This document shows positions 2,727-39,768 of a stretch of DNA of 64,000 nt, one piece after another. A program made the position numbers and the translations under genes. Source of the stretch: Entomortierella parvispora E1425 (lineage: Eukaryota; Fungi; Mortierellomycota); contig BQFW01000014.1 of NCBI GenBank assembly GCA_020891255.1, positions 2,046,001 through 2,110,000 of the forward strand, in the 5' to 3' direction. How positions within the stretch are numbered: position 1 is the stretch's first letter; every line of letters begins with the position of its first letter. The notes beneath the pieces were generated by a model. It did not search any database. It was given only the letters and a program-made list of their open reading frames with translations, and was not told where the DNA came from.

Positions 2727-5700
2727 TTAGAACTCGTATTCCCCACTCATGCTCAGCAGCTCCATCTCTCGCTCAAGCGTCCGTGGTCGTGGCTCTGGAA
2801 GACGGCAAAAAGAGCCACCGAAGTGCTCACGGAGGTTGTATGCGTGGGTACCGTGCGACTGTTGTTGCTGCTGGTCCTGATGTTGATGCGTCGGCAACAA
2901 GTTCGCCTGTGGGTGCACGGTCTTCCCTGGTAGTTGATAACTGGTGATGTTTGAAGACGTCTCCATCGTACCGGGTGAAACCATAATACCATTAATACCC
3001 ATACCATTGGCGCTCTCAATATTGTTCTTCTCTGTCGCTAAAGGACCCACATCTGACAGGTAGCCATTACCTCTCAGCCACTCCTCCACATCTTTGCAGT
3101 CACGCTCTAGCCACAATATGTTCATGCGGATTCCCTCTAAACAGGTCGCAAGAATTCGGTCATATGATGTAGTATCCTTATTTGCAAAGAAGGCCTGAAC
3201 TTCCTGATATCGCTCTATTGTTGAGAACGACTCGATACTCAGCAGCACAAAATAGTCCAAGAATCCAATATCGTCGCAATGGCGCTCATACAACACGTCC
3301 CAGTGATGGCGCATAAAATTCCAAAGCTCAGCTCGGCCAATAACAGAAGATCTCAAAGTTGCAATGGCGCTTAGAATATCCTGAGTTCGCACCTCCGGCG
3401 ACATCGCAAAGGCCAAAGTGCGCCTAACCAGTTCTAGTGAGCTGCCATACCCCATTACAGATAAAGCCACGACTTTCTCTCCAGGGACAAATGTTTCGCG
3501 GTAGTAGTTCACAATGTCCTCGTACTCCTGCACACCTTCCGTTGTTCGGAGTACAATCTCGAAAACAGGGAATCGCAAATCAGGTGGAATAGCTGTCAAA
3601 TCTCTCTCTTGCATGAAAGATCTAAATCGTCTTCGAGCCTCTGCAACAATCCTATTTTTTGTTAACAATCACAATATGGGATGAGTCAAGATATCTTGTC
3701 TCCTATCAGGCTTTGACAACGTTGCAGCATCTTTTCTTACTCAGGGTCTCCTGCTCTCCCAGCAAATCGAATGGCTACAGCTCGAAGATTTCCTGTAGAG
3801 GGGTCTTCGCCTGGAGGAAAGTCCCAGCCAAGTCGCTTCACAATCTTCGTGAATAACCTCCTTTGAACCTCTTTTAGTCCATTCATGATTGGAGCGGGTT
3901 GCTCTAACCAAACAGCTAGCAGCTCCTGCAGTCGTAATGACACCTCAGCCCACACCCTAGATAAGTAAATAGGAAATCTTTAGTATTTTAGAGCCTAGAA
4001 TCATTATTATTCGCTCAACTATCCACTCTTTACTTACATGTAATTTTCTTCATCTTCAAAATACTTAAGAAGCGTCAAGAAGCTGCTTGTTGGGGCGTTG
4101 CCGCTTGCAGTTAATGCTGCTGCATCTGTTAGTAACCCAACACGGTTTGCAGCATTTAGCTGTTCTGTTCCAAATGTTTGACCTAAAAGTGCGAGCGTTT
4201 TCGGCGGATATGAAACACGGTAGAACCCAGTCTGGCCCATATTGAATTTGTACCACTGCGTTGTATCAACATTCAATATGAGTTCCTTTGTGTCCATCAT
4301 AATGTTGCGCGGTGTTGGGTCGGATGCTGTGACAAGTGCCAATGGTACAGGCCAGATAAGACAATCTTCCTCTTCACCCACGTCACCCGTAGAGAGAAAG
4401 AGGTTTTGGCGCACAAGAATAGTCGACTCGTCAAGCTCTGTAATAGAAAGTACAGGATACTATTGATAACTCGCGGTTACTATAGGAGCACATGGAAAAA
4501 TGTGTCATTTCAATATCGTAGACTGTCAATTAGCTCTTACCCCTGTTTGTCGCGTCCATTTACTCATAAATCCTGGCACATCCACGTTGCACTCCTCAGC
4601 AAGTGTCACCCACAAGTCGCTAGTATTGGCGTTGCTCCACATAAACTTGTGAATGAACTTGCGAATCCCCAGTATCAACTGATCTTGACCAAGCCATGCA
4701 CTCAGCATTCGAAGTACTGATGCGCCTTTCATATAGCTGACTTCATCAAAGATTTGAGTGATCTCATTGGGATTGGCAACGCCAACTTCAACTGGATGTG
4801 AAGTTCGAAGAGAATCATGCTTAAGGACCTCCTGGATCCTTTTTACAAACTCTGACCAAATATCCCACCCCGGAAAGAGTTCGTCAACAACAATATAGGC
4901 AAGATGAGTTGCAAAGCCCTCAAATAGCCATAAGTCCGACCACCATTCCATGGTCACCAAATTGCCGAACCACTAAGAGACGTTAGGTAAGTATCATAAA
5001 AAGTAAATCTAGACAGGCTGGATGGTAAAAAGCCTTATTAAAATACCTGATGGGATATTTCATGGATGACAGTGGCTGCAATCTCATGTCTCCGGTCTTG
5101 CGATCCATACTCCTCGATAAGGAGAGCATATGTTCGGAAAGTAATGAGCCCCCAGTTTTCCATTGCCCCTGGTGCAAAATCAGGAACAGCAACCATGTCA
5201 AGCTTGGGTAGAGGATATGGAATATTGAACAGTCGCGAGAAATATTCAACAGCCTAGCTCCATCCAGTCGGTGAACGATGCAGTTAGTAGAGTATTTGTC
5301 ACTATTCCACCTCAACGTCATAAAATCATCAATATTCGTACCTTAACGGCAAGGTCAAGTGAGTAATGACCTTGTTCAGCGAGACCCACCGGTGTGTAAA
5401 CTCGGCACAGAACTTTTTCTCCACTGAACTCTCCAGAAGTATAGGCCTCGATGTAGTCAAAGTCGCCAATCATCCATGCCAATAGCTACATTATATTCAA
5501 GGCAGTTTTAGCACAAACGTTTCTGAAGCTTGCACGCAGACTGGTAAAGCTCTTACATATGTGGCCATGATAGGTGTCTTCATAAAGTGAACCTCCTGCA
5601 TTCCATTTTCCAAGAGGGAGGTTGAGAGGACACTCATATTAGACAAGCAGGTCATGCCCTGTGGCGCGACAAGTGTCAAAGAAAACGTCGCCTTGATAGC

Positions 5701-31252: not shown

Positions 31253-33389
31253 TCAACTTTTATTTGGAAGTGGCATGGCCGTACCAAACACAAAGTCGGG
31301 CGAATAAGACAAAGGGATGGCACTGAAGTTCTTTCCTTGATTCTGAGGGGACCAAGCGCTACTGCGTTGGGACCAGATCGCTTTAAGTCTGTCCAAATGA
31401 GACATTTCCCCCATGCTGCCACCGTTCAAGGCCTGCCGCTTTGTTGGAGAGACAAGAGGCAATGGGGCACAGCTCGAGGAACTATCTGATACCCTTCTTG
31501 AATCTTGCTTGGAACTGGAAAGCAAACGCGACAAGGCAGCATATCCATGTGGACTGACCTCTAGGGCTCCTTTGATTTTACCGAATCGTCCCATGCTTTC
31601 AGTTCCCCGAGGAGTGACTGTTCCAGAGAGTGATGAGTCCTCTGTGGAATCCTGCCCCGATTCGTACTCATTGAGAGTTGAGTTCACCTCTCTCCGCTCA
31701 CGGCTTATCTCTTTTCCATCTTCCCTCATCAATGTAGGTACTGATGGAGATCGACGCACTACGGCGATCTCTACACATTCAAGGACCTCACGGACCTTCA
31801 ACACAGAGGCCCTGGGCTGGTGATAGGGTTGGTGCTGTGTGAAGATAACGCCTGTCTCCGAAGTGTTTCTTTGGGGATACTCTCTGTCGTCAGATCGATC
31901 TGTCTCCGTTTCCGATAGGTCCAATGAAGCTGACCGGTTGTCTGCTAAGGGCTCTGAAGGTGACACGGTAGCTCTATGATCAGGCAGGTGTATCTCAGAG
32001 TGGAATTCTTCTGCGTAGTTTTGATGAGCCTGCTCGGTCCAACTTTCTTGGTCGACTGCCTCCTGCATGGATGCTTCTGGAAGAACTGCATCTGTTTGGT
32101 GTTGTGAGTGCTGCTGGATCCAGTTTGCACTGTCGCTTTCTCCCAGTAGAGATTGCTCACTGTTGCCTTTGCCGTCGTTTTCTTCCTCCAGGGATGTTTC
32201 AAATACATTTGTTTCTGTATGGTTTTGTTGGCTTTGCTCGATGCTGATATTACCAATGTTTCCTTGCTGTGGGGATGCATCTCGCAGAATTGCTTCCGTT
32301 TGTAGTTGGCTACATTCAATGTTGGTTCCGCCGAAGGCTTCATCCCTCTGGATTTTCTCGAGGAGAGGCACCTCTGTTTGCCGTTGGTATTGCTCAATCC
32401 TGATTTCAATTTGGGCTTCATTCTGTTGACCTGCTTCGAGAAGCACTTCTGTCCGATGCTGGCACTGATCGATCCTGCCTTCGGTGTGGACTTTTTCTTG
32501 CATAAATGTCTCCGATAATGCTGTTCCCGCTCCATTTGGTCGATATTCCTCAGTGCTGCTCTCATTGTCGGGATCTCTTTCCGAGAATGTCTCATGGAGT
32601 GATGGTTCTGCGCGCTGTTGCCTTGTATCAAGGAGAGGCACCGTTTGACTATGATCGAGTGTCTCGACCCTGATTTCGCCTGGTTGAAACGTCTCTGACG
32701 GTGTAACTTCTGCTTGACTTCGTGGTACTGATACCGAAGGCACCCACCCTCGCTCGTCGTCAAAGTTGGACGTATCCGATGTTATTCGGTCAACGCTACT
32801 TCCAGATTGATGGTGCAACCCATCAAACTCATACTGCAGCTGGATCAGCGTCTCTGCTCCAAGTAGTCTCCTCTCAAGTTCTGCATTCAATTCCTGTTGC
32901 CGCTGTTCCCGCAGTTGCTGTTCCAGTAGTTGCTGTTCCCGCAGTTGCTGTTCCAGTAGTTGCTGTTCCAGTAGTTGCTGTTCCAGTAGTTGCTGTTCCA
33001 GTAGTTGCTGTTCCAGTAGTTGCTGTTCCAGTAGTTGCTGTTCCAACTGTTGCTGTTGCTGTTGCTTTTGTAGTTGTTGCTGTTGCTGTTGTTGTCGACG
33101 TCGTTTGTGCCTAGTGGAGATGATTTCTCCGGAGGTATCGCGCGATTGTCGAGATTTTGGAGGCCGCTTGAGACTGTCTGTGAGTTCAATTTTGGTGAAG
33201 AAGACGTGCGGACGCCTGGGCGTCTGTAATGTATGCGACAGAGATGGCGCGTCATCTTCTTGTCGGTAACTATGAGAAATGAACCCTGGACAAAACCGAG
33301 GTCAACACGAAGAACATGCCTATAGCATATAACTCAAATTTCTTTCTGTCGCAACCCCTCTTCCTGCAGCACAGTTGCTCACCTTCCAT
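31253..33389 (-). CDS. Hypothetical low-complexity Q/E/S-rich protein, 2 exons
   Basis: ATG GAA G|GTGAGC, intron 33286-33382, then a frame open through (EQQLL)n to the stop at 31253. No known domain recognised. Confidence 0.7.
32902..33049 (-). repeat. 15-bp coding tandem repeat (EQQLL/EQQLR), ~9-10 units
   Basis: GAACAGCAACTACTG repeated, with a CTGCGG variant. Confidence 0.92.
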
Positions 33390-33477: not shown

Positions 33478-33502
33478 CACGTGATATCAACAGTAGCACG
33501 TG
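33478..33502. promoter_or_regulatory. Paired E-boxes (CACGTG at 33478 and 33497) followed by CCAAT
   Basis: Two CACGTG sites 19 bp apart, ~90-110 bp upstream of the ATG at 33389. Confidence 0.45.
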
Positions 33503-33547
33503 ACCAATCGTCATCTGAATCATAAGTGTTAAATGTCTGTCCTTAGA

Positions 33548-34155
33548 TGTCGTGACTCTCGGTATCACGACTGATCCTTAGGGTGTGTCGAGCGTGTTCT
33601 TCTACACTGGGCACCACAGTCAGCTACCTTGACTGTAATCGAGATGGAAGGGCAAAGAAAGGATATGTTTAATAAGATATTCTGTGTGTTACTACTGATA
33701 GGGTTCTCAAGAGGGTTACCTGTAATCGAGATGGAAGGGCAAAGAAAGGATGCCGTTCTAAGTCTCGATACAGAGCTACTTATATACTGAAGGTAGTGAA
33801 GTGAGACTATACTGCTGACACTATGGAAATAAATAGTGAAGGGCTTATGACTATTCTGGAATAGGGGCCCTAACGTCCGAGGTTTCAAAGAGCTTGGTCG
33901 ACCGGCGTGGAGACAAGCTTTTGATTGGCAACGGTTGGTAGGTTAATGTCGGAGAAACATGAAATGCTCCGTTCGTGAGTATACACGATTGAGGGTAGTC
34001 GACCTGGTGATGGTCAACGACGATGACGCGCGGCACAAGTGCAATGAGGGCGCGCAACAAGGGTCCATTCATCAGGCGTGTCGGCGGTCAGGTGATCGTA
34101 AGTCATGTGATCAGACGCGGAGCTGGCGGGGATAAAAGCAGTCTGATTCACGACA
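33548..34155 (-). repeat. 3' LTR of family C
   Basis: No difference from 39046-39653 found by eye (constant offset 5498). Internal 32-bp direct repeat at 33633-33664 and 33720-33751. Confidence 0.97.
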
Positions 34156-34772
34156 CTCCCCCCACAGGCTTCAGGCCGTCCTCGGCCTGCCTGCAACTGA
34201 TTGACTCTGGGTTCGCGAGTACGTTGGCCACGGCGACGAGGCTTCGGGGCAGAAGCAGCAAGTGCCTGTCTGTACACGCGGGCAGCTTCAGCGGCGGAAC
34301 CCATCATAGGCGGTTCGTAAGTGCCAAGTTGATCGCGACGGGCAAGGTAATCTTCATTGGCGGTTCTAAGAGCGAGGGCCTCCTCCACGCGCTGTTCCTC
34401 CTCAGTGCGGCTTTCAATTGGAAGACCATCGTCAGAGTTGTCGTTGGCTTGCTCCATGGTGTGCTTTGTCTTAGTGACCCAAGCACGGCGTGCAGATGCT
34501 TCATCTGGCGGATAAGCACGCTTAAGACGGTCTTGGTGTACTAAGTCCGTCTTCAACTCACCATCTCCCCAGCGGAGCTGATAAGTCGACAAGGGCGTAA
34601 TACGGATCACTTCCAACGGGCCATAAAAATGGGGTTGAAGCTTCGTACGGCCGAAGTTCTTGACCAGGACAAAATCACCAACTGCGAACTTATGATCGGT
34701 GACCGTGTGTGTCTCTTCATGGTGTGCGGCCATATCATCTGCGGCGGTCTGCTGGGCCTGCAGGTGCTTTTT
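34014..34772 (-). CDS. Integrase C-terminal module (GPY/F plus a ~120-aa extension) in the +1 frame
   Basis: FAVGDFVLVK...QPHFYGPLEV...YQL...VHQDRLK motif. The frame is open from 35000 to 34014 and runs through the PPT into the LTR. Confidence 0.75.
   Translation of the reverse strand, partial: KKHLQAQQTAADDMAAHHEETHTVTDHKFAVGDFVLVKNFGRTKLQPHFYGPLEVIRITPLSTYQLRWGDGELKTDLVHQDRLKRAYPPDEASARRAWVTKTKHTMEQANDNSDDGLPIESRTEEEQRVEEALALRTANEDYLARRDQLGTYEPPMMGSAAEAARVYRQALAASAPKPRRRGQRTREPRVNQLQAGRGRPEACGGSVVNQTAFIPASSASDHMTYDHLTADTPDEWTLVARPHCTCAARHRR
34156..34163 (-). other. Polypurine tract of family C
   Basis: GGGGGGAG directly before the 3' LTR on the minus strand. Confidence 0.85.
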
Positions 34773-37700
34773 CTCGGAGGGCGTCGATTTCTCGAAAAGT
34801 CTTGCGACGATGTTCTGCAAAATCGTCTTGATCTTGAAAATCAAACAAGAATGGGCGTACTGGATCTTGCGGCAAACGGGGTTCAAGTCCATAAACAAGT
34901 TGAAATGGGCTGACCTTGGTTCGCTGAGAGATGTGTACGCGACAAGCGAACAGACTCTGGTGCAGGTACTGATCCCAGCTGTGGATGTGTGTACCCACAT
35001 ACTTGCTCAACATGTGTCCGATAACACCATTGAGACGCTCACACTTTCCATTCGACCTTGGATGGTAAGCAGACGTAGCCTTGTGTTTGATGTGCAGCTT
35101 CTCCAAATAGCGTTGAAGAACGTCAGACATGAAGTTGGCTCCTCGGTCGCTAACGATCTCGCTAGGGCAGCCAAACTGTAAGACGATCTCTTCATAGAGA
35201 AAAGTAGCAACGGCGTCGGCGGTTGCTTCTGGCAAGGCTCTTGCGATCGGCCAGTTCGTGGCATGGTCGATTGCAGTAATGATCCAACGGTTTCCCTTCT
35301 TGGTGGCTGGCATGCGACCAATAAAATCAATTCCCCAGCGCTCAAACGGACGTGCTGGCGCCAATGGATGCAACGGTGCAACAGAGCGGTCACCACCGGG
35401 CTTGACCAATTGACACGGCTTGCATTCACGTACTACTGCTTTGATATCTGTTCGAAGACTGGGCCACCACATGCGAGTCTTGGCCAAATCAAACGTTCCA
35501 GACTCTCCAAGATGTCCAATGTCGGTGTGCAACTCAATGAGACGATCTGCGCGCTCTGCAAACGGAACGAAGGGAACTGCTCTTCCTTCAACCATGTAGC
35601 GCAATTCGTCGTCATCAGTCGTGAAGTTATGAGCCTCCTTGCGGACTCTCTTCTTGGTGTCTCCATCGGTATGGGGCGGAAAAGAACCATCATCCAGAAA
35701 TGCAGGGACAAGCAACGGCCAATCCCAAGTGTCGATGTGACGTCCTGCTGTCACATTGTTGATTTGCAATCTGGAAAGCGCATCTGCAGCGATGTTGGTG
35801 GCTCCTGCCTTATACTGGATCGACAGGTTGTAGGGGGCCAAAAATTCAACCCAACGGGTCATTCTCGGGCTCAGGTGTGGCTGGGTCAACAAAAATCGTA
35901 GACTTGCATGGTCAGTGTAGACCACGTTTTCGGGGGCGCCAAGAATAAACGTGCGCCATGCTCTGCATGCGTGAACAATGGCGAGGAGTTCCTTCTCATG
36001 GACCGGGTAGTTCTTCTCGGCTGGCTTAAGTTTTCGTGACTCATAGGCAACTGGGTGTCTTTTGCCTTCGTGCATCTGATAAAGGACTCCTCCTGTGGCA
36101 ATGTCGGATGCATCGGTTTCCATATAGTACGGCTCATCGGGGTGTCCAAGGCACAATACAGGGGTAGTCGCTAGAAGTTCTTTGATTCCATCGAAAGCGG
36201 CTTGTTGAACTGGGCCCCAAGTAGGCACGGGTCGCAACTTTCCTTTGTTTGGGCCTGGACCAGTGGTCAACAAGTCTGTAAGACAAGCAGTGACTTCGGC
36301 ATGGTGGAAAATATGACGGCGATGGTAGTTCACAAATCCAATGAATGAACGAAGCTCTTGTACGTTGGTTGGGGTGGGCCAGTTCTTGACAACTGCGACC
36401 TTGGCTGGATCCACTTGAATTCCATCGTAGGATATCACATGTCCGACGAAGGTGATGCTGGATAATCCAAACGCACATTTGCTTTGCTTGGCATGTAGGT
36501 GATGTTTTCGCAGCGTTGATAGCACTGTTCGGATGTGCTTCAAGTGTTCTTCGAAAGTCTTGGAGTAGATCAGGATGTCATCGAGGTAGACAACAACGAA
36601 CTGATCCAACTCTTTACTGAAAATCGTATTCATGAAGGCTTGAAACGACGCGGGCGCGTTGGTAAGACCAAAAGCCATGACACAGTACTCGTAGTGTCCA
36701 TATCGGGTAGAGAACGCTGTCTTGGGTCTGTCCTCTTCTGCAACTTGAAGTTGATGATATCCCTGCTGGAGATCCAACTTGCTGAAATAACGGGCTCCTC
36801 GCATGCGATCGAAAAATTCATCGGTGTGCGGGAGAAAATACTTGTTCTTGATCGTGACGGCGTTGAGTCCACGATAGTCGATGCACAGTCTCAATGTTCC
36901 ATCTTTCTTCTTGACGAACAGGACTGGTGCGGCCCACGGCGACGTTGAGGGCTGGATGTACCCCAACCGTAACAGCTCATCCAACTGTTCTTTGAGAGTC
37001 TTGAGCTCGAGGGGTGACATCTTATATATCTTCTTGACCACAGGACTTGTTACTCCAGTGGGGATTTGGTGATCGAAACCGGGACGGGCTGGTGGCATCT
37101 CTGAGAGTGGAGCGAATACATCCTGCTGGTACTCCTTCACTATCTCATCGATTTGAGCTTGCTGTTCTACTGTCAGGTCCGGGTTGGTCATGAGCTCTTC
37201 TGCTCGGGTGTGTTCTGGAACGTGGGTTTTCATTAACCAAACGATTCCTGCTTCTTGTGTATCATCGGCGGCCATGGTGTGTAAGAACCGCTGTGCGTTC
37301 GTCTGCACATATGCAAGTTCAGGTACCTGTTCGTTCTGCAGAAGGGTACTGGCGGGCTGAGATCTGGCGATGGCTTCGTGTTTTCGGCCATTGACTTGCC
37401 AAGTCAATGAGTAGCGATCCCAATTGATTTGAGGTTTGTAGCGGAACATCCATGGAAGTCCAATGAAAACATCGTGAGCTAGGTCGGGAACAACCGTGGC
37501 TGTGAAACGGCAGGTGTGTTCTCCAATAACAACTCGAAGGATGACTTCGCCTAGTGCCTTAGCACCTAGGTCTCCTGCATGGGCTGTTCGTACAGGGGTC
37601 GGCTCATAGATTCGTTTTTCATCGAGGATGGATTCCGGGGATTCTTCACGGATAACTTCGAGGGCACGAGAAGAAATAACGTTGACGTTGGCGCCGTTAT

Positions 37701-38895
37701 CAAAAAGGGCGTCGAATTGCCAACCGTCGACGTAGAGGGGTACGACCATCAATGGGCAAGTTTCGGGCTTGAAATCTTGTGGATCGATATGGGTCATGTT
37801 GATGTTCACGTTTGGGCGATTCCTTCGTTGTGGTCGTCCTTGGTTTTGTCCTCCTTGAGGGCAGTCGCGTTTGTAGTGTCCTCGCTGTCCACAGTTATAA
37901 CAAGTTTGCGGCTTGGGGCATTCTGCGGCCTTGTGATTGTCTCCGCAATTGTGGCACTCGATGTTGAACACATCAACGTCCATATCCATCGAAGATCGAC
38001 GACCTTGACTTTGATTTTGGTTTTGGGTGCTGTCTCGTCGATCTGGAGGGCGTGAAAACGGATGACCAGAGAAACTAACGCGTTTTCCAGTTGAAAAACC
38101 AGTAGTGGGGTTTCCAGTAATGTGAGAGGGACGAGGGGGCGGGGCTGTTGCTGCAGCGTGGTGTTGGAAAAGTCTTGGGGAACCAAAGCGTGATGGAGCA
38201 ACAAAAGGGCGAGACGGCGGCGTTTGTCTGGCTTGGTTGATTCGGTTCTGCGCGGATTGGGAAATGATACCAAGGCTTGTGCTCATCTCTGTTCGGATTT
38301 CACAGTGTTGGCGGACTTGTTGCCAGGTTTTGACTTGGTGCTCGATCAGAAATTTTCGCAAAAATTGTGGACTTCGGGTCTTGAAGACGTGTACTTTTTC
38401 TCCTTCAGATACATTGGTACCAAGAGGCATCAAAGCAAACTGAAAACGGTGGAAGAAGGTGTTGGGGGTGTCTGTCTTTTCCCAGACAACACTATCGAGT
38501 TCGTTGCGAAGGGTCTCTTCCAAGTCTTCTGAGCTGAACTGACTTAAAAAGGCGGCTGAGAAAGTGTCCCACGTGGCATTGGTGTGGAGTGAGTTGTAAT
38601 TCAGGCCCCAGACTCTTGCGTCACCTCGAAGCTTGGCAATCGCGGCTCTGGGCCATTTCGGTCTAGGAATCTCACTGATGTCTGCAATCAACTCTGTCTG
38701 TAGCAACCATGCTCGGGCCTCGTGGTGGGAGCAGGTGCCATTGAAAGTTTCATGATCCGAGGGCAAAAGGTTCTTTTTGGGACGATCATTGTGGATCACA
38801 GGTTCGGGAACGGTGAAGGTGGAGGCGGCGTGATAGCTTGACGTGTTGGGCTCCTCGTCAATATCGTCGTCGAAGTTGTGTTGATGTTGATTCAT
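34735..38895 (-). CDS. Gag-Pol polyprotein (single ORF, 1386 aa)
   Basis: Two zinc knuckles (CHNCGDNHKAAEC, CYNCGQRGHYKRDC), protease LFDNGAN, RT YLDD, RNase H ETDAS/KELLAIV/TDH, integrase HHCC and WGIDFIG/SDRG/KCERLNG. Confidence 0.96.
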   Translation of the reverse strand: MNQHQHNFDDDIDEEPNTSSYHAASTFTVPEPVIHNDRPKKNLLPSDHETFNGTCSHHEARAWLLQTELIADISEIPRPKWPRAAIAKLRGDARVWGLNYNSLHTNATWDTFSAAFLSQFSSEDLEETLRNELDSVVWEKTDTPNTFFHRFQFALMPLGTNVSEGEKVHVFKTRSPQFLRKFLIEHQVKTWQQVRQHCEIRTEMSTSLGIISQSAQNRINQARQTPPSRPFVAPSRFGSPRLFQHHAAATAPPPRPSHITGNPTTGFSTGKRVSFSGHPFSRPPDRRDSTQNQNQSQGRRSSMDMDVDVFNIECHNCGDNHKAAECPKPQTCYNCGQRGHYKRDCPQGGQNQGRPQRRNRPNVNINMTHIDPQDFKPETCPLMVVPLYVDGWQFDALFDNGANVNVISSRALEVIREESPESILDEKRIYEPTPVRTAHAGDLGAKALGEVILRVVIGEHTCRFTATVVPDLAHDVFIGLPWMFRYKPQINWDRYSLTWQVNGRKHEAIARSQPASTLLQNEQVPELAYVQTNAQRFLHTMAADDTQEAGIVWLMKTHVPEHTRAEELMTNPDLTVEQQAQIDEIVKEYQQDVFAPLSEMPPARPGFDHQIPTGVTSPVVKKIYKMSPLELKTLKEQLDELLRLGYIQPSTSPWAAPVLFVKKKDGTLRLCIDYRGLNAVTIKNKYFLPHTDEFFDRMRGARYFSKLDLQQGYHQLQVAEEDRPKTAFSTRYGHYEYCVMAFGLTNAPASFQAFMNTIFSKELDQFVVVYLDDILIYSKTFEEHLKHIRTVLSTLRKHHLHAKQSKCAFGLSSITFVGHVISYDGIQVDPAKVAVVKNWPTPTNVQELRSFIGFVNYHRRHIFHHAEVTACLTDLLTTGPGPNKGKLRPVPTWGPVQQAAFDGIKELLATTPVLCLGHPDEPYYMETDASDIATGGVLYQMHEGKRHPVAYESRKLKPAEKNYPVHEKELLAIVHACRAWRTFILGAPENVVYTDHASLRFLLTQPHLSPRMTRWVEFLAPYNLSIQYKAGATNIAADALSRLQINNVTAGRHIDTWDWPLLVPAFLDDGSFPPHTDGDTKKRVRKEAHNFTTDDDELRYMVEGRAVPFVPFAERADRLIELHTDIGHLGESGTFDLAKTRMWWPSLRTDIKAVVRECKPCQLVKPGGDRSVAPLHPLAPARPFERWGIDFIGRMPATKKGNRWIITAIDHATNWPIARALPEATADAVATFLYEEIVLQFGCPSEIVSDRGANFMSDVLQRYLEKLHIKHKATSAYHPRSNGKCERLNGVIGHMLSKYVGTHIHSWDQYLHQSLFACRVHISQRTKVSPFQLVYGLEPRLPQDPVRPFLFDFQDQDDFAEHRRKTFREIDALREKAPAGPADRRR

Positions 38896-38934
38896 GATGT
38901 AAGAAAGTGGGTAGGGAAGGTGGTCGTCTTGAAT

Positions 38935-39035
38935 GGCGTGGCGGTAGGACTACTACTGTCCTTTGGATGGGCGTGGCGGTAGGACTACTACTGTCCTTTG
39001 GATGGGCGTGGCGGTAGGACTGCTACTGTCCTTTG
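38935..39035. repeat. 35-bp tandem repeat (2 full units + 1 partial) in the retrotransposon leader
   Basis: GGCGTGGCGGTAGGACT(A/G)CTACTGTCCTTTG(GATG) starting at 38935, 38970 and 39005. Confidence 0.93.
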
Positions 39036-39041
39036 CTACCA
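39029..39041 (-). other. Primer-binding site, probably for initiator tRNA-Met
   Basis: TGGTAGCAAAGGA, 4 nt after the 5' LTR. TGGTAGC is the iMet-type PBS start, as in Ty3. The host iMet sequence was not available to confirm this. Confidence 0.75.
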
Positions 39042-39045
39042 AATT

Positions 39046-39653
39046 TGTCGTGACTCTCGGTATCACGACTGATCCTTAGGGTGTGTCGAGCGTGTTCTTC
39101 TACACTGGGCACCACAGTCAGCTACCTTGACTGTAATCGAGATGGAAGGGCAAAGAAAGGATATGTTTAATAAGATATTCTGTGTGTTACTACTGATAGG
39201 GTTCTCAAGAGGGTTACCTGTAATCGAGATGGAAGGGCAAAGAAAGGATGCCGTTCTAAGTCTCGATACAGAGCTACTTATATACTGAAGGTAGTGAAGT
39301 GAGACTATACTGCTGACACTATGGAAATAAATAGTGAAGGGCTTATGACTATTCTGGAATAGGGGCCCTAACGTCCGAGGTTTCAAAGAGCTTGGTCGAC
39401 CGGCGTGGAGACAAGCTTTTGATTGGCAACGGTTGGTAGGTTAATGTCGGAGAAACATGAAATGCTCCGTTCGTGAGTATACACGATTGAGGGTAGTCGA
39501 CCTGGTGATGGTCAACGACGATGACGCGCGGCACAAGTGCAATGAGGGCGCGCAACAAGGGTCCATTCATCAGGCGTGTCGGCGGTCAGGTGATCGTAAG
39601 TCATGTGATCAGACGCGGAGCTGGCGGGGATAAAAGCAGTCTGATTCACGACA
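39046..39653 (-). repeat. 5' LTR of family C
   Basis: Copy of 33548-34155. Confidence 0.97.
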
Positions 39654-39668
39654 TAGATATATTAGCCT

Positions 39669-39740
39669 TCCTAGTTGGTCCAGTGGTCAGGATTTGTCGC
39701 TCTCACCGACAAGGCCCGGGTTCGATCCCCGGACTGGGAA
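39669..39740 (+). tRNA. tRNA-Glu (anticodon CTC), intronless
   Basis: 72 nt. Acceptor stem TCCTAGT/ACTGGGA, A box TGGTCCAGTGG, anticodon arm TGTCG-CTCTCAC-CGACA, B box GGTTCGATCCC, with T-tracts downstream. Confidence 0.96.
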
Positions 39741-39768
39741 TTCTTTTCTTTTGCTCCCTCTTTCTGAT

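Follow-up and report, generated by a model that had tools for sequence, protein, structure and literature searches.

In the genome of the fungus Entomortierella parvispora E1425 (Mortierellomycota), a Ty3/gypsy long terminal repeat (LTR) retrotransposon ends directly ahead of a tRNA-Glu(CTC) gene. The locus lies in a 64,000-nucleotide stretch of contig BQFW01000014.1 (GenBank assembly GCA_020891255.1, forward strand, positions 2,046,001 to 2,110,000), called the window here. The element is 6,106 bp long (window 33548-39653, minus strand), and the U3 tip of its 5' LTR ends 15 nt ahead of the mature tRNA-Glu 5' end. Is this position an accident, or does it reflect an integration system which seeks out tRNA genes? 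An earlier note, made from the window alone, had suggested tRNA-gene targeting. Copies at random distances from such genes were looked for genome-wide; instead, every one of the 15 copies lies next to a tRNA gene, at a spacing like that of Ty3. That integration is targeted to tRNA genes is practically certain. The explanation favoured here, and a highly probable one, is that a family of Metaviridae integrates at the RNA polymerase III (Pol III) transcription start of these genes.

Genome-wide distribution of the family

The 608-bp LTR was searched against the whole genome (38.89 Mb, 20 contigs), and ARAGORN was run on the flanks. For E1425, the published genome (Nanopore reads, Pilon polishing) comprises 38.66 Mb in 19 contigs plus the mitochondrion and has 192 nuclear tRNA genes (PMC8759367). 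The LTR search gave 27 matches, which make up ten full-length elements, four solo LTRs and one 113-bp tip fragment. A tRNA gene adjoins the same LTR end, the U3 end, in all 15 insertions, which lie 7-35 nt upstream of it (median 15). The gaps, measured from the LTR tip to the mature tRNA end and good to about ±1 nt, are 7, 14, 14, 14, 15, 15, 15, 16, 17, 17, 20, 20, 20, 22 and 35 nt. Only about 2e-4 of the genome falls in the 40-nt stretches ahead of the 192 nuclear tRNA genes, so 15 out of 15 is not a chance result. Eleven tRNA kinds are found among the targets, which indicates that no tRNA sequence is recognised. The element strand is opposite to that of the tRNA in every case (two-sided p = 6e-5). 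Target site duplications (TSDs) match in nine of the ten full-length copies, and each is different from the others. Because every copy has its own TSD, flanks and tRNA, these are independent integrations and not one duplicated locus. The copies are listed below, with TSDs written in the tRNA direction.

Copy 1: window, full-length, Glu-CTC, gap 15, TAGA
Copy 2: C8:1.24 Mb, full-length, Lys-CTT, gap 22, AGAT
Copy 3: C12, full-length, Asn-GTT, gap 14, CGCC / ACAC (no match)
Copy 4: C8:2.33 Mb, full-length, Cys-GCA, gap 7, TCAA
Copy 5: C8:0.60 Mb, full-length, Met-CAT, gap 20, CAAT
Copy 6: C1:2.85 Mb, full-length, Met-CAT, gap 20, TCGT
Copy 7: C1:1.83 Mb, full-length, Asn-GTT, gap 35, TCCA
Copy 8: C13, full-length, Ser-AGA, gap 15, ACTT
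Copy 9: C11:0.85 Mb, full-length, Leu-AAG, gap 15, TTCC
Copy 10: C7, full-length, Leu-CAA, gap 14, AAAT
Copy 11: C15, solo LTR, His-GTG, gap 17, TSD without match
Copy 12: C1:2.80 Mb, solo LTR, Gly-TCC, gap 20, TSD without match
Copy 13: C2, solo LTR, Glu-CTC, gap 16, CTTC
Copy 14: C14:2.00 Mb, solo LTR, Asp-GTC, gap 14, TSD without match
Copy 15: C11:0.75 Mb, tip fragment, Gly-GCC, gap 17

Other gypsy elements (38-41% Pol identity) have inserted into the copies at C8:1.24 Mb (G000:C8:1243393-1254569) and C1:2.85 Mb (G000:C1:2851259-2867111), which for this reason reach 10.6 kb and 15.2 kb; both keep matching TSDs of their own.

The two LTRs of the window copy are direct repeats, identical at 608/608 positions, as the earlier note had thought from their appearance. 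In all ten full-length copies the LTR pair differs by 0-1 position or by one homopolymer indel, and no LTR is separated from the window LTR by more than 4/608 positions (0.7%). The open frame across the reverse transcriptase-integrase match ranges from 769 to 1,657 amino acids among the copies. The family is very young and probably still active. Near-identical LTRs also mean that selection has had little time to clear insertions elsewhere. It should be noted that the assembly is Nanopore-based and that Pilon polishes repeats poorly; single-base homopolymer differences may thus be errors.

What sets the insertion point

Empty sites were rebuilt for ten insertions by joining the outer flank of the 3' LTR to the sequence past the 5' LTR. 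At 12 of 15 sites the first two nucleotides after the TSD are CA or TA, frequently within CATCAA or CAACA (background 0.16, p = 8e-8). Pyrimidine-A and CAA-type sequences are typical of Pol III start sites in the tRNA genes of yeast and plants. A CACGTGA box is located 34-44 nt upstream of the TSD in 8 of the 10 rebuilt sites; no CACGTG is seen within 60 nt at the Leu(AAG) site, and CACGTA only at the Leu(CAA) site. This box-to-TSD spacing is tighter than the distance from the TSD to the mature tRNA (7-35 nt), and the presumed leader varies in length from 3 to 31 nt. The regular CA/TA, the tight box spacing and the 11 tRNA kinds argue that the ruler is the initiation complex bound upstream together with the start site, and not the tRNA sequence or the internal A and B boxes. 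Insertions just upstream of tRNA genes of any isotype characterise Pol III start-site targeting; 15 insertions at 11 tRNA kinds fit this description, with the start site inferred. Anchoring to the start site or to the pre-initiation complex has a high probability.

A mechanism of the following kind is proposed. The tether of the intasome would be the Pol III pre-initiation complex that assembles upstream of the start site, most likely through TFIIIB (TBP/Brf1), as for Ty3; TFIIIB is slightly favoured as direct partner. An asymmetric contact of the intasome would fix the orientation, and the integrase C-terminus (an SH3-like domain plus a conserved, lineage-specific, mostly helical extension of ~90 amino acids) would be the likeliest tethering module.

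Several points weigh against this explanation. Leader lengths and the CA/TA dinucleotide are the basis for placing the insertions at a putative start site. A TFIIIB contact, if real, would have to differ from that of Ty3, as the integrase has no chromodomain; DGLT-A of Dictyostelium discoideum reaches the same kind of site via the TFIIIC subunit Tfc4 (PMC6101501). The copies are fixed genomic insertions and not de novo events; selection may have sharpened the pattern, especially the orientation. Two insertions, with gaps of 7 and 35 nt, fall outside the main cluster. There is also a 983-bp integrase relic (G000:C6:919986-920967, L034:4986-5967), 88% identical, with no tRNA within 5 kb. It is the sole family sequence not found beside a tRNA gene; it has no LTR, its ends are missing, and it says little. 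The host genes for TBP and Brf1 are each split into many short exons.

Orientation

The orientation is fixed and divergent in 15/15 genomic copies and in a relative from a metagenome assembly (L085, described below). Ty3 and DGLT-A insert in either orientation (PMC5911963). In the case of Ty3, the TFIIIC subunit Tfc1 enables both orientations, and truncation of TFIIIC leaves one (PMC5911963, PMC4600332). Among wild-type LTR elements, a fixed orientation is reported for Tj1 alone, and there it is co-directional with the tRNA (PMC4600332). The use of both orientations, a Ty3-type feature, is thus absent from the E. parvispora family: all 15 copies have the same one. Either an asymmetric contact between intasome and initiation complex or selection against the other orientation would explain this; both would fit.

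Alternative explanations

The same positions could be reached through TFIIIC, in the manner of DGLT-A, with RNase H and/or an N-terminal extension of the integrase on the tauA subunit Tfc4 (or Tfc1). DGLT-A binds Tfc4 and not TFIIIB, and inserts 13-33 bp upstream of the tRNA (PMC6101501, PMC5911963), a range which overlaps the main cluster of 14-22 nt seen here; an integrase that has no chromodomain for a Ty3-type Brf1 contact would suit such a tether. However, TFIIIC sits on the internal A and B boxes and should give a constant distance to the mature end, whereas the observed distances run from 7 to 35 nt. What is regular is the spacing from the upstream box, along with the CA/TA dinucleotide. 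DGLT-A uses either orientation, and the E. parvispora family one. A TFIIIC tether is improbable on this evidence. A tether to a sequence-specific upstream factor, for example a basic helix-loop-helix (bHLH) protein presumed to sit on CACGTGA, is much less probable again. It would account for the spacing of the box at eight of the ten empty sites, and the motif is specific to regions upstream of tRNA genes (21/36 against 0/36 controls). Yet the box is not enriched at occupied genes (8/10 against 21/36 unoccupied ones, Fisher p = 0.28), and the two Leu sites, one with no CACGTG nearby and the other with CACGTA only, were used all the same.

The absence of any targeting would require random insertion followed by survival near tRNA genes, segmental duplication, or an assembly artefact. 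That the copies are fixed in the genome and that the assembly is Nanopore-based are the points in its favour. Survival is at odds with the identical LTR pairs, which leave little time for selection. Duplication of one locus is contradicted by the separate TSD, flanks and tRNA isotype of each copy. Insertion points precise to a few nucleotides, a uniform orientation and the same junction in a relative from an unrelated metagenome assembly also speak against the absence of targeting. This last alternative is barely credible.

Integrase C-terminus

The integrase of Ty3 has an SH3-like C-terminal domain which binds TBP, and a vestigial chromodomain, missed by sequence methods, which binds Brf1 (PMC8632968). 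As that chromodomain escaped sequence methods, its absence here was checked by structure as well. In three family members, a Pfam search with a cutoff as loose as E<=10 gives no chromodomain (PF00385); the C-terminal integrase matches are of the SH3 type and weak. The AlphaFold model contains no chromodomain either. The element was therefore rightly described in the earlier note as a non-chromodomain Ty3/gypsy element, and it lacks the integrase C-terminal chromodomain by which chromoviruses are defined. The model covers the last 247 residues and was made from a nine-sequence alignment; its mean pLDDT (predicted local distance difference test) is 63, which is moderate confidence. It has an SH3 barrel, helices at model residues 98-105, 119-144 and 155-169, and then a disordered basic tail. 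Foldseek matches the barrel alone, to the integrase C-terminal domains of murine leukaemia virus (MLV), Ty3 and prototype foamy virus (PFV) and to Tudor domains.

The extension of ~90 amino acids is conserved among family members down to 58% Pol identity. It holds a W..KTKHTME..DN.DDGLP segment and two helices. Relatives from Mucorales and Calcarisporiella do not have it; their tails after the SH3 domain are short. A profile of the extension, searched against 1.84 billion representative proteins, gave matches in this family only. The extension is the obvious candidate for the targeting module, and a different integrase C-terminus probably means a different host contact. Over the integrase, the match to Ty3 is no better than that to foamy virus (E about 1e-24 for both). 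The family gives no sign of a specially close kinship to Ty3; with its single orientation, a C-terminus lacking the chromodomain and a distant integrase, it falls outside the Ty3 lineage in the narrow sense.

LTR tip and tRNA upstream motifs

Two features are found near the tip of the 5' LTR of the window copy:

39629-39636, plus strand: TATA-like GATAAAAG, read in the tRNA direction, ending 17 nt from the LTR tip
39602-39608, plus strand: imperfect E-box CATGTGA, 45-51 nt from the LTR tip

At native sites, the sequence ahead of the tRNA gene contains a TATA-like element, ~13-29 nt from where the element inserts, and the CACGTGA box at 34-44 nt. Across five family members, TGTCGTGAAT at the tip and an A-rich TATA-like run at 17-24 nt are kept, while the remainder has diverged. 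Three of the five members also have exact motif copies no more than 120 nt from the tip: L085 has GGTGGCG and CACGTG, L087 has GGTGGCG, and L029 has TTAAGGG twice. These motifs were counted in the 130 nt upstream of 36 unoccupied tRNA genes and in control DNA 600-730 nt away:

CACGTG: upstream 21/36, controls 0/36
GGTGGCG: upstream 6/36, controls 0/36
CCCTTAA: upstream 9/36, controls 0/36

Before the unoccupied tRNA genes (loci L041-L070), CACGTG(A) is often present in 2-3 copies ~20 bp apart, at -55 to -100. The upstream motifs look like sites for Pol II-type factors (bHLH or Myb-like). A literature search gave no paper on such motifs before tRNA genes of this fungus.

One possible, if doubtful, reading is that the LTR tip is a portable Pol III upstream promoter, which replaces the displaced TATA-like box and the CACGTG, GGTGGCG and CCCTTAA motifs at the right spacing. 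Taken with the lineage-specific integrase extension, such a promoter would imply an independent origin of Pol III start-site targeting in Mortierellomycota. The tip motifs fit equally well with the same factors driving the element's own transcription. Promoter replacement, if true, would keep the target tRNA gene working and open to further targeting, and would explain the single orientation.

TSDs are unmatched at three of the four solo LTRs and at the C12 element. The solo LTR at C14:2.00 Mb, which is at a tRNA-Asp gene, is abutted by a 99-nt piece (G000:C14:2004125-2004223, L033:6126-6224). This piece, which starts TGTCGTGATC, may derive from an older LTR related to the family, as its tip; CTTTTAT occurs in it at the family spacing, and two CACGTGA boxes are present. 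From position 100 on there is a different repeat, with at least five other copies, two of which lie 1.5-2 kb from tRNA genes. Repeat targeting of an occupied tRNA gene would explain both the unmatched TSDs and the C14 piece.

Relatives and known systems

A relative of the family is found in an ENA metagenome assembly (L085). Its protein P0143 is 63% identical to P0001, the best protein match of the window element, and its LTRs are 96-97% alike. A tRNA-Cys(GCA) gene lies on the opposite strand, 15-16 nt from the tip of its 5' LTR. The same architecture is thus present in a clearly different element from another sample. Most metagenome contigs of the family are collapsed units without flanks, and L085 is the only one which has kept its 5' flank. 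A search of metagenomes with a degenerate LTR-tip pattern yielded a single contig of the family, two matches due to chance and no junctions, and a Gag-only protein search toward 5' flanks gave no matches.

Other gypsy families of the same genome share 35-50% Pol identity with this one; at three of their loci, no tRNA lies within 10 kb. Among named elements, the closest relatives over reverse transcriptase, RNase H and integrase are gypsy elements of Mucorales and Calcarisporiella (44-51% identity), which also have no chromodomain. Genomic copies of three of these relatives (from Rhizopus delemar, Absidia glauca and Mucor saturninus) are not at a tRNA 5' end. The Rhizopus delemar copy (CH476737.1, L030:10511-10828) has a tRNA-Ile gene ~70 bp past its 3' LTR, with the tRNA 3' end toward the element, a lone case and perhaps a coincidence.

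Start-site integration as proposed here is the behaviour of Ty3 (1-4 bp ahead of the Pol III start) and of Tj1 (1-10 bp) (PMC5911963). Ty3 of Saccharomyces cerevisiae resembles the E. parvispora family in its gypsy order of protease, reverse transcriptase, RNase H and integrase, in its position a few bp upstream of the Pol III start and ~16-19 bp before the mature end, and in having no isotype preference. It differs in using both orientations, in its Brf1-binding vestigial chromodomain, where the E. parvispora family has an unrelated helical extension, and in its +1 frameshift; the E. parvispora family has a single gag-pol frame, a 4-bp TSD and a host in a different phylum. Tj1 of Schizosaccharomyces japonicus is co-directional with its target, whereas the E. 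parvispora family is divergent and turns the opposite LTR end toward the gene. Tj1 also self-primes, unlike the present element with its tRNA-type TGG primer-binding site, and it targets 5S genes as well; here 15/15 insertions are at tRNA genes.

DGLT-A is likewise a gypsy element in which gag and pol share one frame and a canonical chromodomain is lacking; it is found 13-33 bp upstream of tRNA coding sequences (PMC5911963). Unlike the E. parvispora family, it inserts in either orientation, is tethered to TFIIIC Tfc4 via RNase H and an N-terminal extension of the integrase (PMC6101501), and lives in an amoebozoan host from which no full-length active copies are reported. Tca8/beta of Candida albicans and Tyl3, Ylt1 and Tyl6 of Yarrowia lipolytica are gypsy elements located from a few to ~30 bp upstream of tRNA genes (PMC5911963); their hosts are Saccharomycotina, and they were compared by position only.

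According to the earlier note, such targeting is not known to have been described in an early-diverging fungal lineage. The host is indeed a member of such a lineage. Full-text literature searches found Pol III-start-targeted gypsy elements in Saccharomycotina, Schizosaccharomyces and Dictyostelia only, that is, in ascomycete yeasts and dictyostelids, and none for Mortierella or Mucoromycota. By function, the family belongs to the class of gypsy elements which target Pol III start sites; the phylum, the fixed divergent orientation and the integrase C-terminus are new.

Structure of the element in the window

The window copy has the following parts:

33544-33547: left TSD copy TAGA, 4 bp
33548-34155, minus strand: 3' LTR, 608 bp, TG...CA ends
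34156-34163, minus strand: polypurine tract GGGGGGAG (element strand), directly upstream of the 3' LTR
34014-35000, minus strand: second open frame, encoding the integrase C-terminus (SH3-like C-terminal domain with a GPY/F-type motif, the ~90-amino-acid extension and a tail running into the LTR)
34735-38895, minus strand: gag-pol open frame of 1,386 amino acids (Gag, two CCHC knuckles, protease region, reverse transcriptase, RNase H, integrase HHCC and catalytic core)
34766-34772, minus strand: homopolymer A-run, 5 A in the window copy and 4 A in the other nine copies
38923-39035, minus strand: tandem 35-bp repeats of the 5' untranslated leader, three units here and four in some of the other copies
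39030-39041, minus strand: primer-binding site TGGTAGCAAAGG, 4 nt past the 5' LTR on the element strand
39046-39653, minus strand: 5' LTR, 608 bp, TG...CA ends, U3 tip toward the tRNA gene
39654-39657: right TSD copy TAGA, -15 to -12 relative to the mature tRNA-Glu 5' end

The element has the structural parts expected of Metaviridae, namely TG..CA LTRs, a TSD, a primer-binding site and a polypurine tract. Pfam domains occur in the gag-pol frame in the order Retrotrans_gag, zf-CCHC, RVT_1, RT_RNaseH, Integrase_H2C2 and rve. The order protease, reverse transcriptase, RNase H, integrase and the gypsy-type reverse transcriptase assign the element to Ty3/gypsy (Metaviridae). The best solved-structure match of the reverse transcriptase/RNase H is Ty3 (E = 1.8e-83), and the best protein match is P0001, annotated as 'putative transposase [Entomortierella parvispora]' and 100% identical over the matched part. 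The polypurine tract is kept as GGGGGAG in the relatives L028 and L029. The primer-binding site, of the tRNA type with TGG, is also conserved in relatives.

The A-run at 34766-34772 splits the integrase frame in the window copy only. The fifth A may be a real mutation or a Nanopore homopolymer error. The spacing of the LTRs is 5,498 in some copies and 5,533-5,535 in others, which matches three against four leader repeats. These repeats start right after the primer-binding site and duplicate part of it (CCAAAGGACAGTAG...).

As for the primer tRNA, a 10-mer complementary to the primer-binding site is no commoner in the genome than its control, and an 18-mer from the longer primer-binding site of a relative gave no good match. 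A cluster of five matches on C9 is not a tRNA.

Just left of the element, a 15-bp tandem array (GTTGCTGTTCCAGTA-like, ~16 units, window 32861-33100) lies within a minus-strand open frame (31253-33046). It is probably a repetitive coding region.

The tRNA-Glu gene

The adjoining gene and its surroundings comprise:

33497-33503, plus strand: CACGTGA box from the original upstream region of tRNA-Glu; the 6.1-kb insertion now lies between it and the gene
39658-39668, plus strand: presumed 11-nt 5' leader TATATTAGCCT, beginning with a TA initiator-like dinucleotide at the inferred transcription start
39669-39740, plus strand: tRNA-Glu(CTC), Infernal/Rfam 58 bits; ARAGORN gives 39668-39741
39744-39747, plus strand: TTTT terminator of tRNA-Glu(CTC)

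The gag-pol frame is on the minus strand and the tRNA on the plus strand; transcription is thus divergent. The earlier note had put the end of the element at 39653, the start of the tRNA at 39669 and the TAGA duplication at -15 to -12, and had the element transcribed away from the tRNA. All these coordinates are correct, and the two strands bear out the direction. Four points go beyond that note: the uniform orientation of the copies, the transcription start and not the mature tRNA end as the likely anchor, the integrase extension peculiar to the family, and the promoter-like character of the LTR tip.

Significance

Retroelements that integrate precisely at Pol III start sites are the classic example of 'safe-haven' targeting. 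Such integration has so far been described in ascomycete yeasts (Ty3, Tj1, Tca8 and the Yarrowia elements) and in dictyostelid amoebae, where it evolved with different tethers, TFIIIB and TFIIIC. The E. parvispora family extends this behaviour to an early-diverging fungal phylum. It has several useful traits: its copies are near-identical and probably active, its orientation rule is the opposite of that of Tj1, and its integrase has no Ty3-type chromodomain. It offers a third, independent system for the study of how an intasome reads the Pol III pre-initiation complex, and allows a test of whether a retroelement carries a replacement promoter for the gene which it adjoins. Mortierellaceae include industrial oleaginous fungi; for these, an element which integrates site-specifically and spares genes could become a tool.

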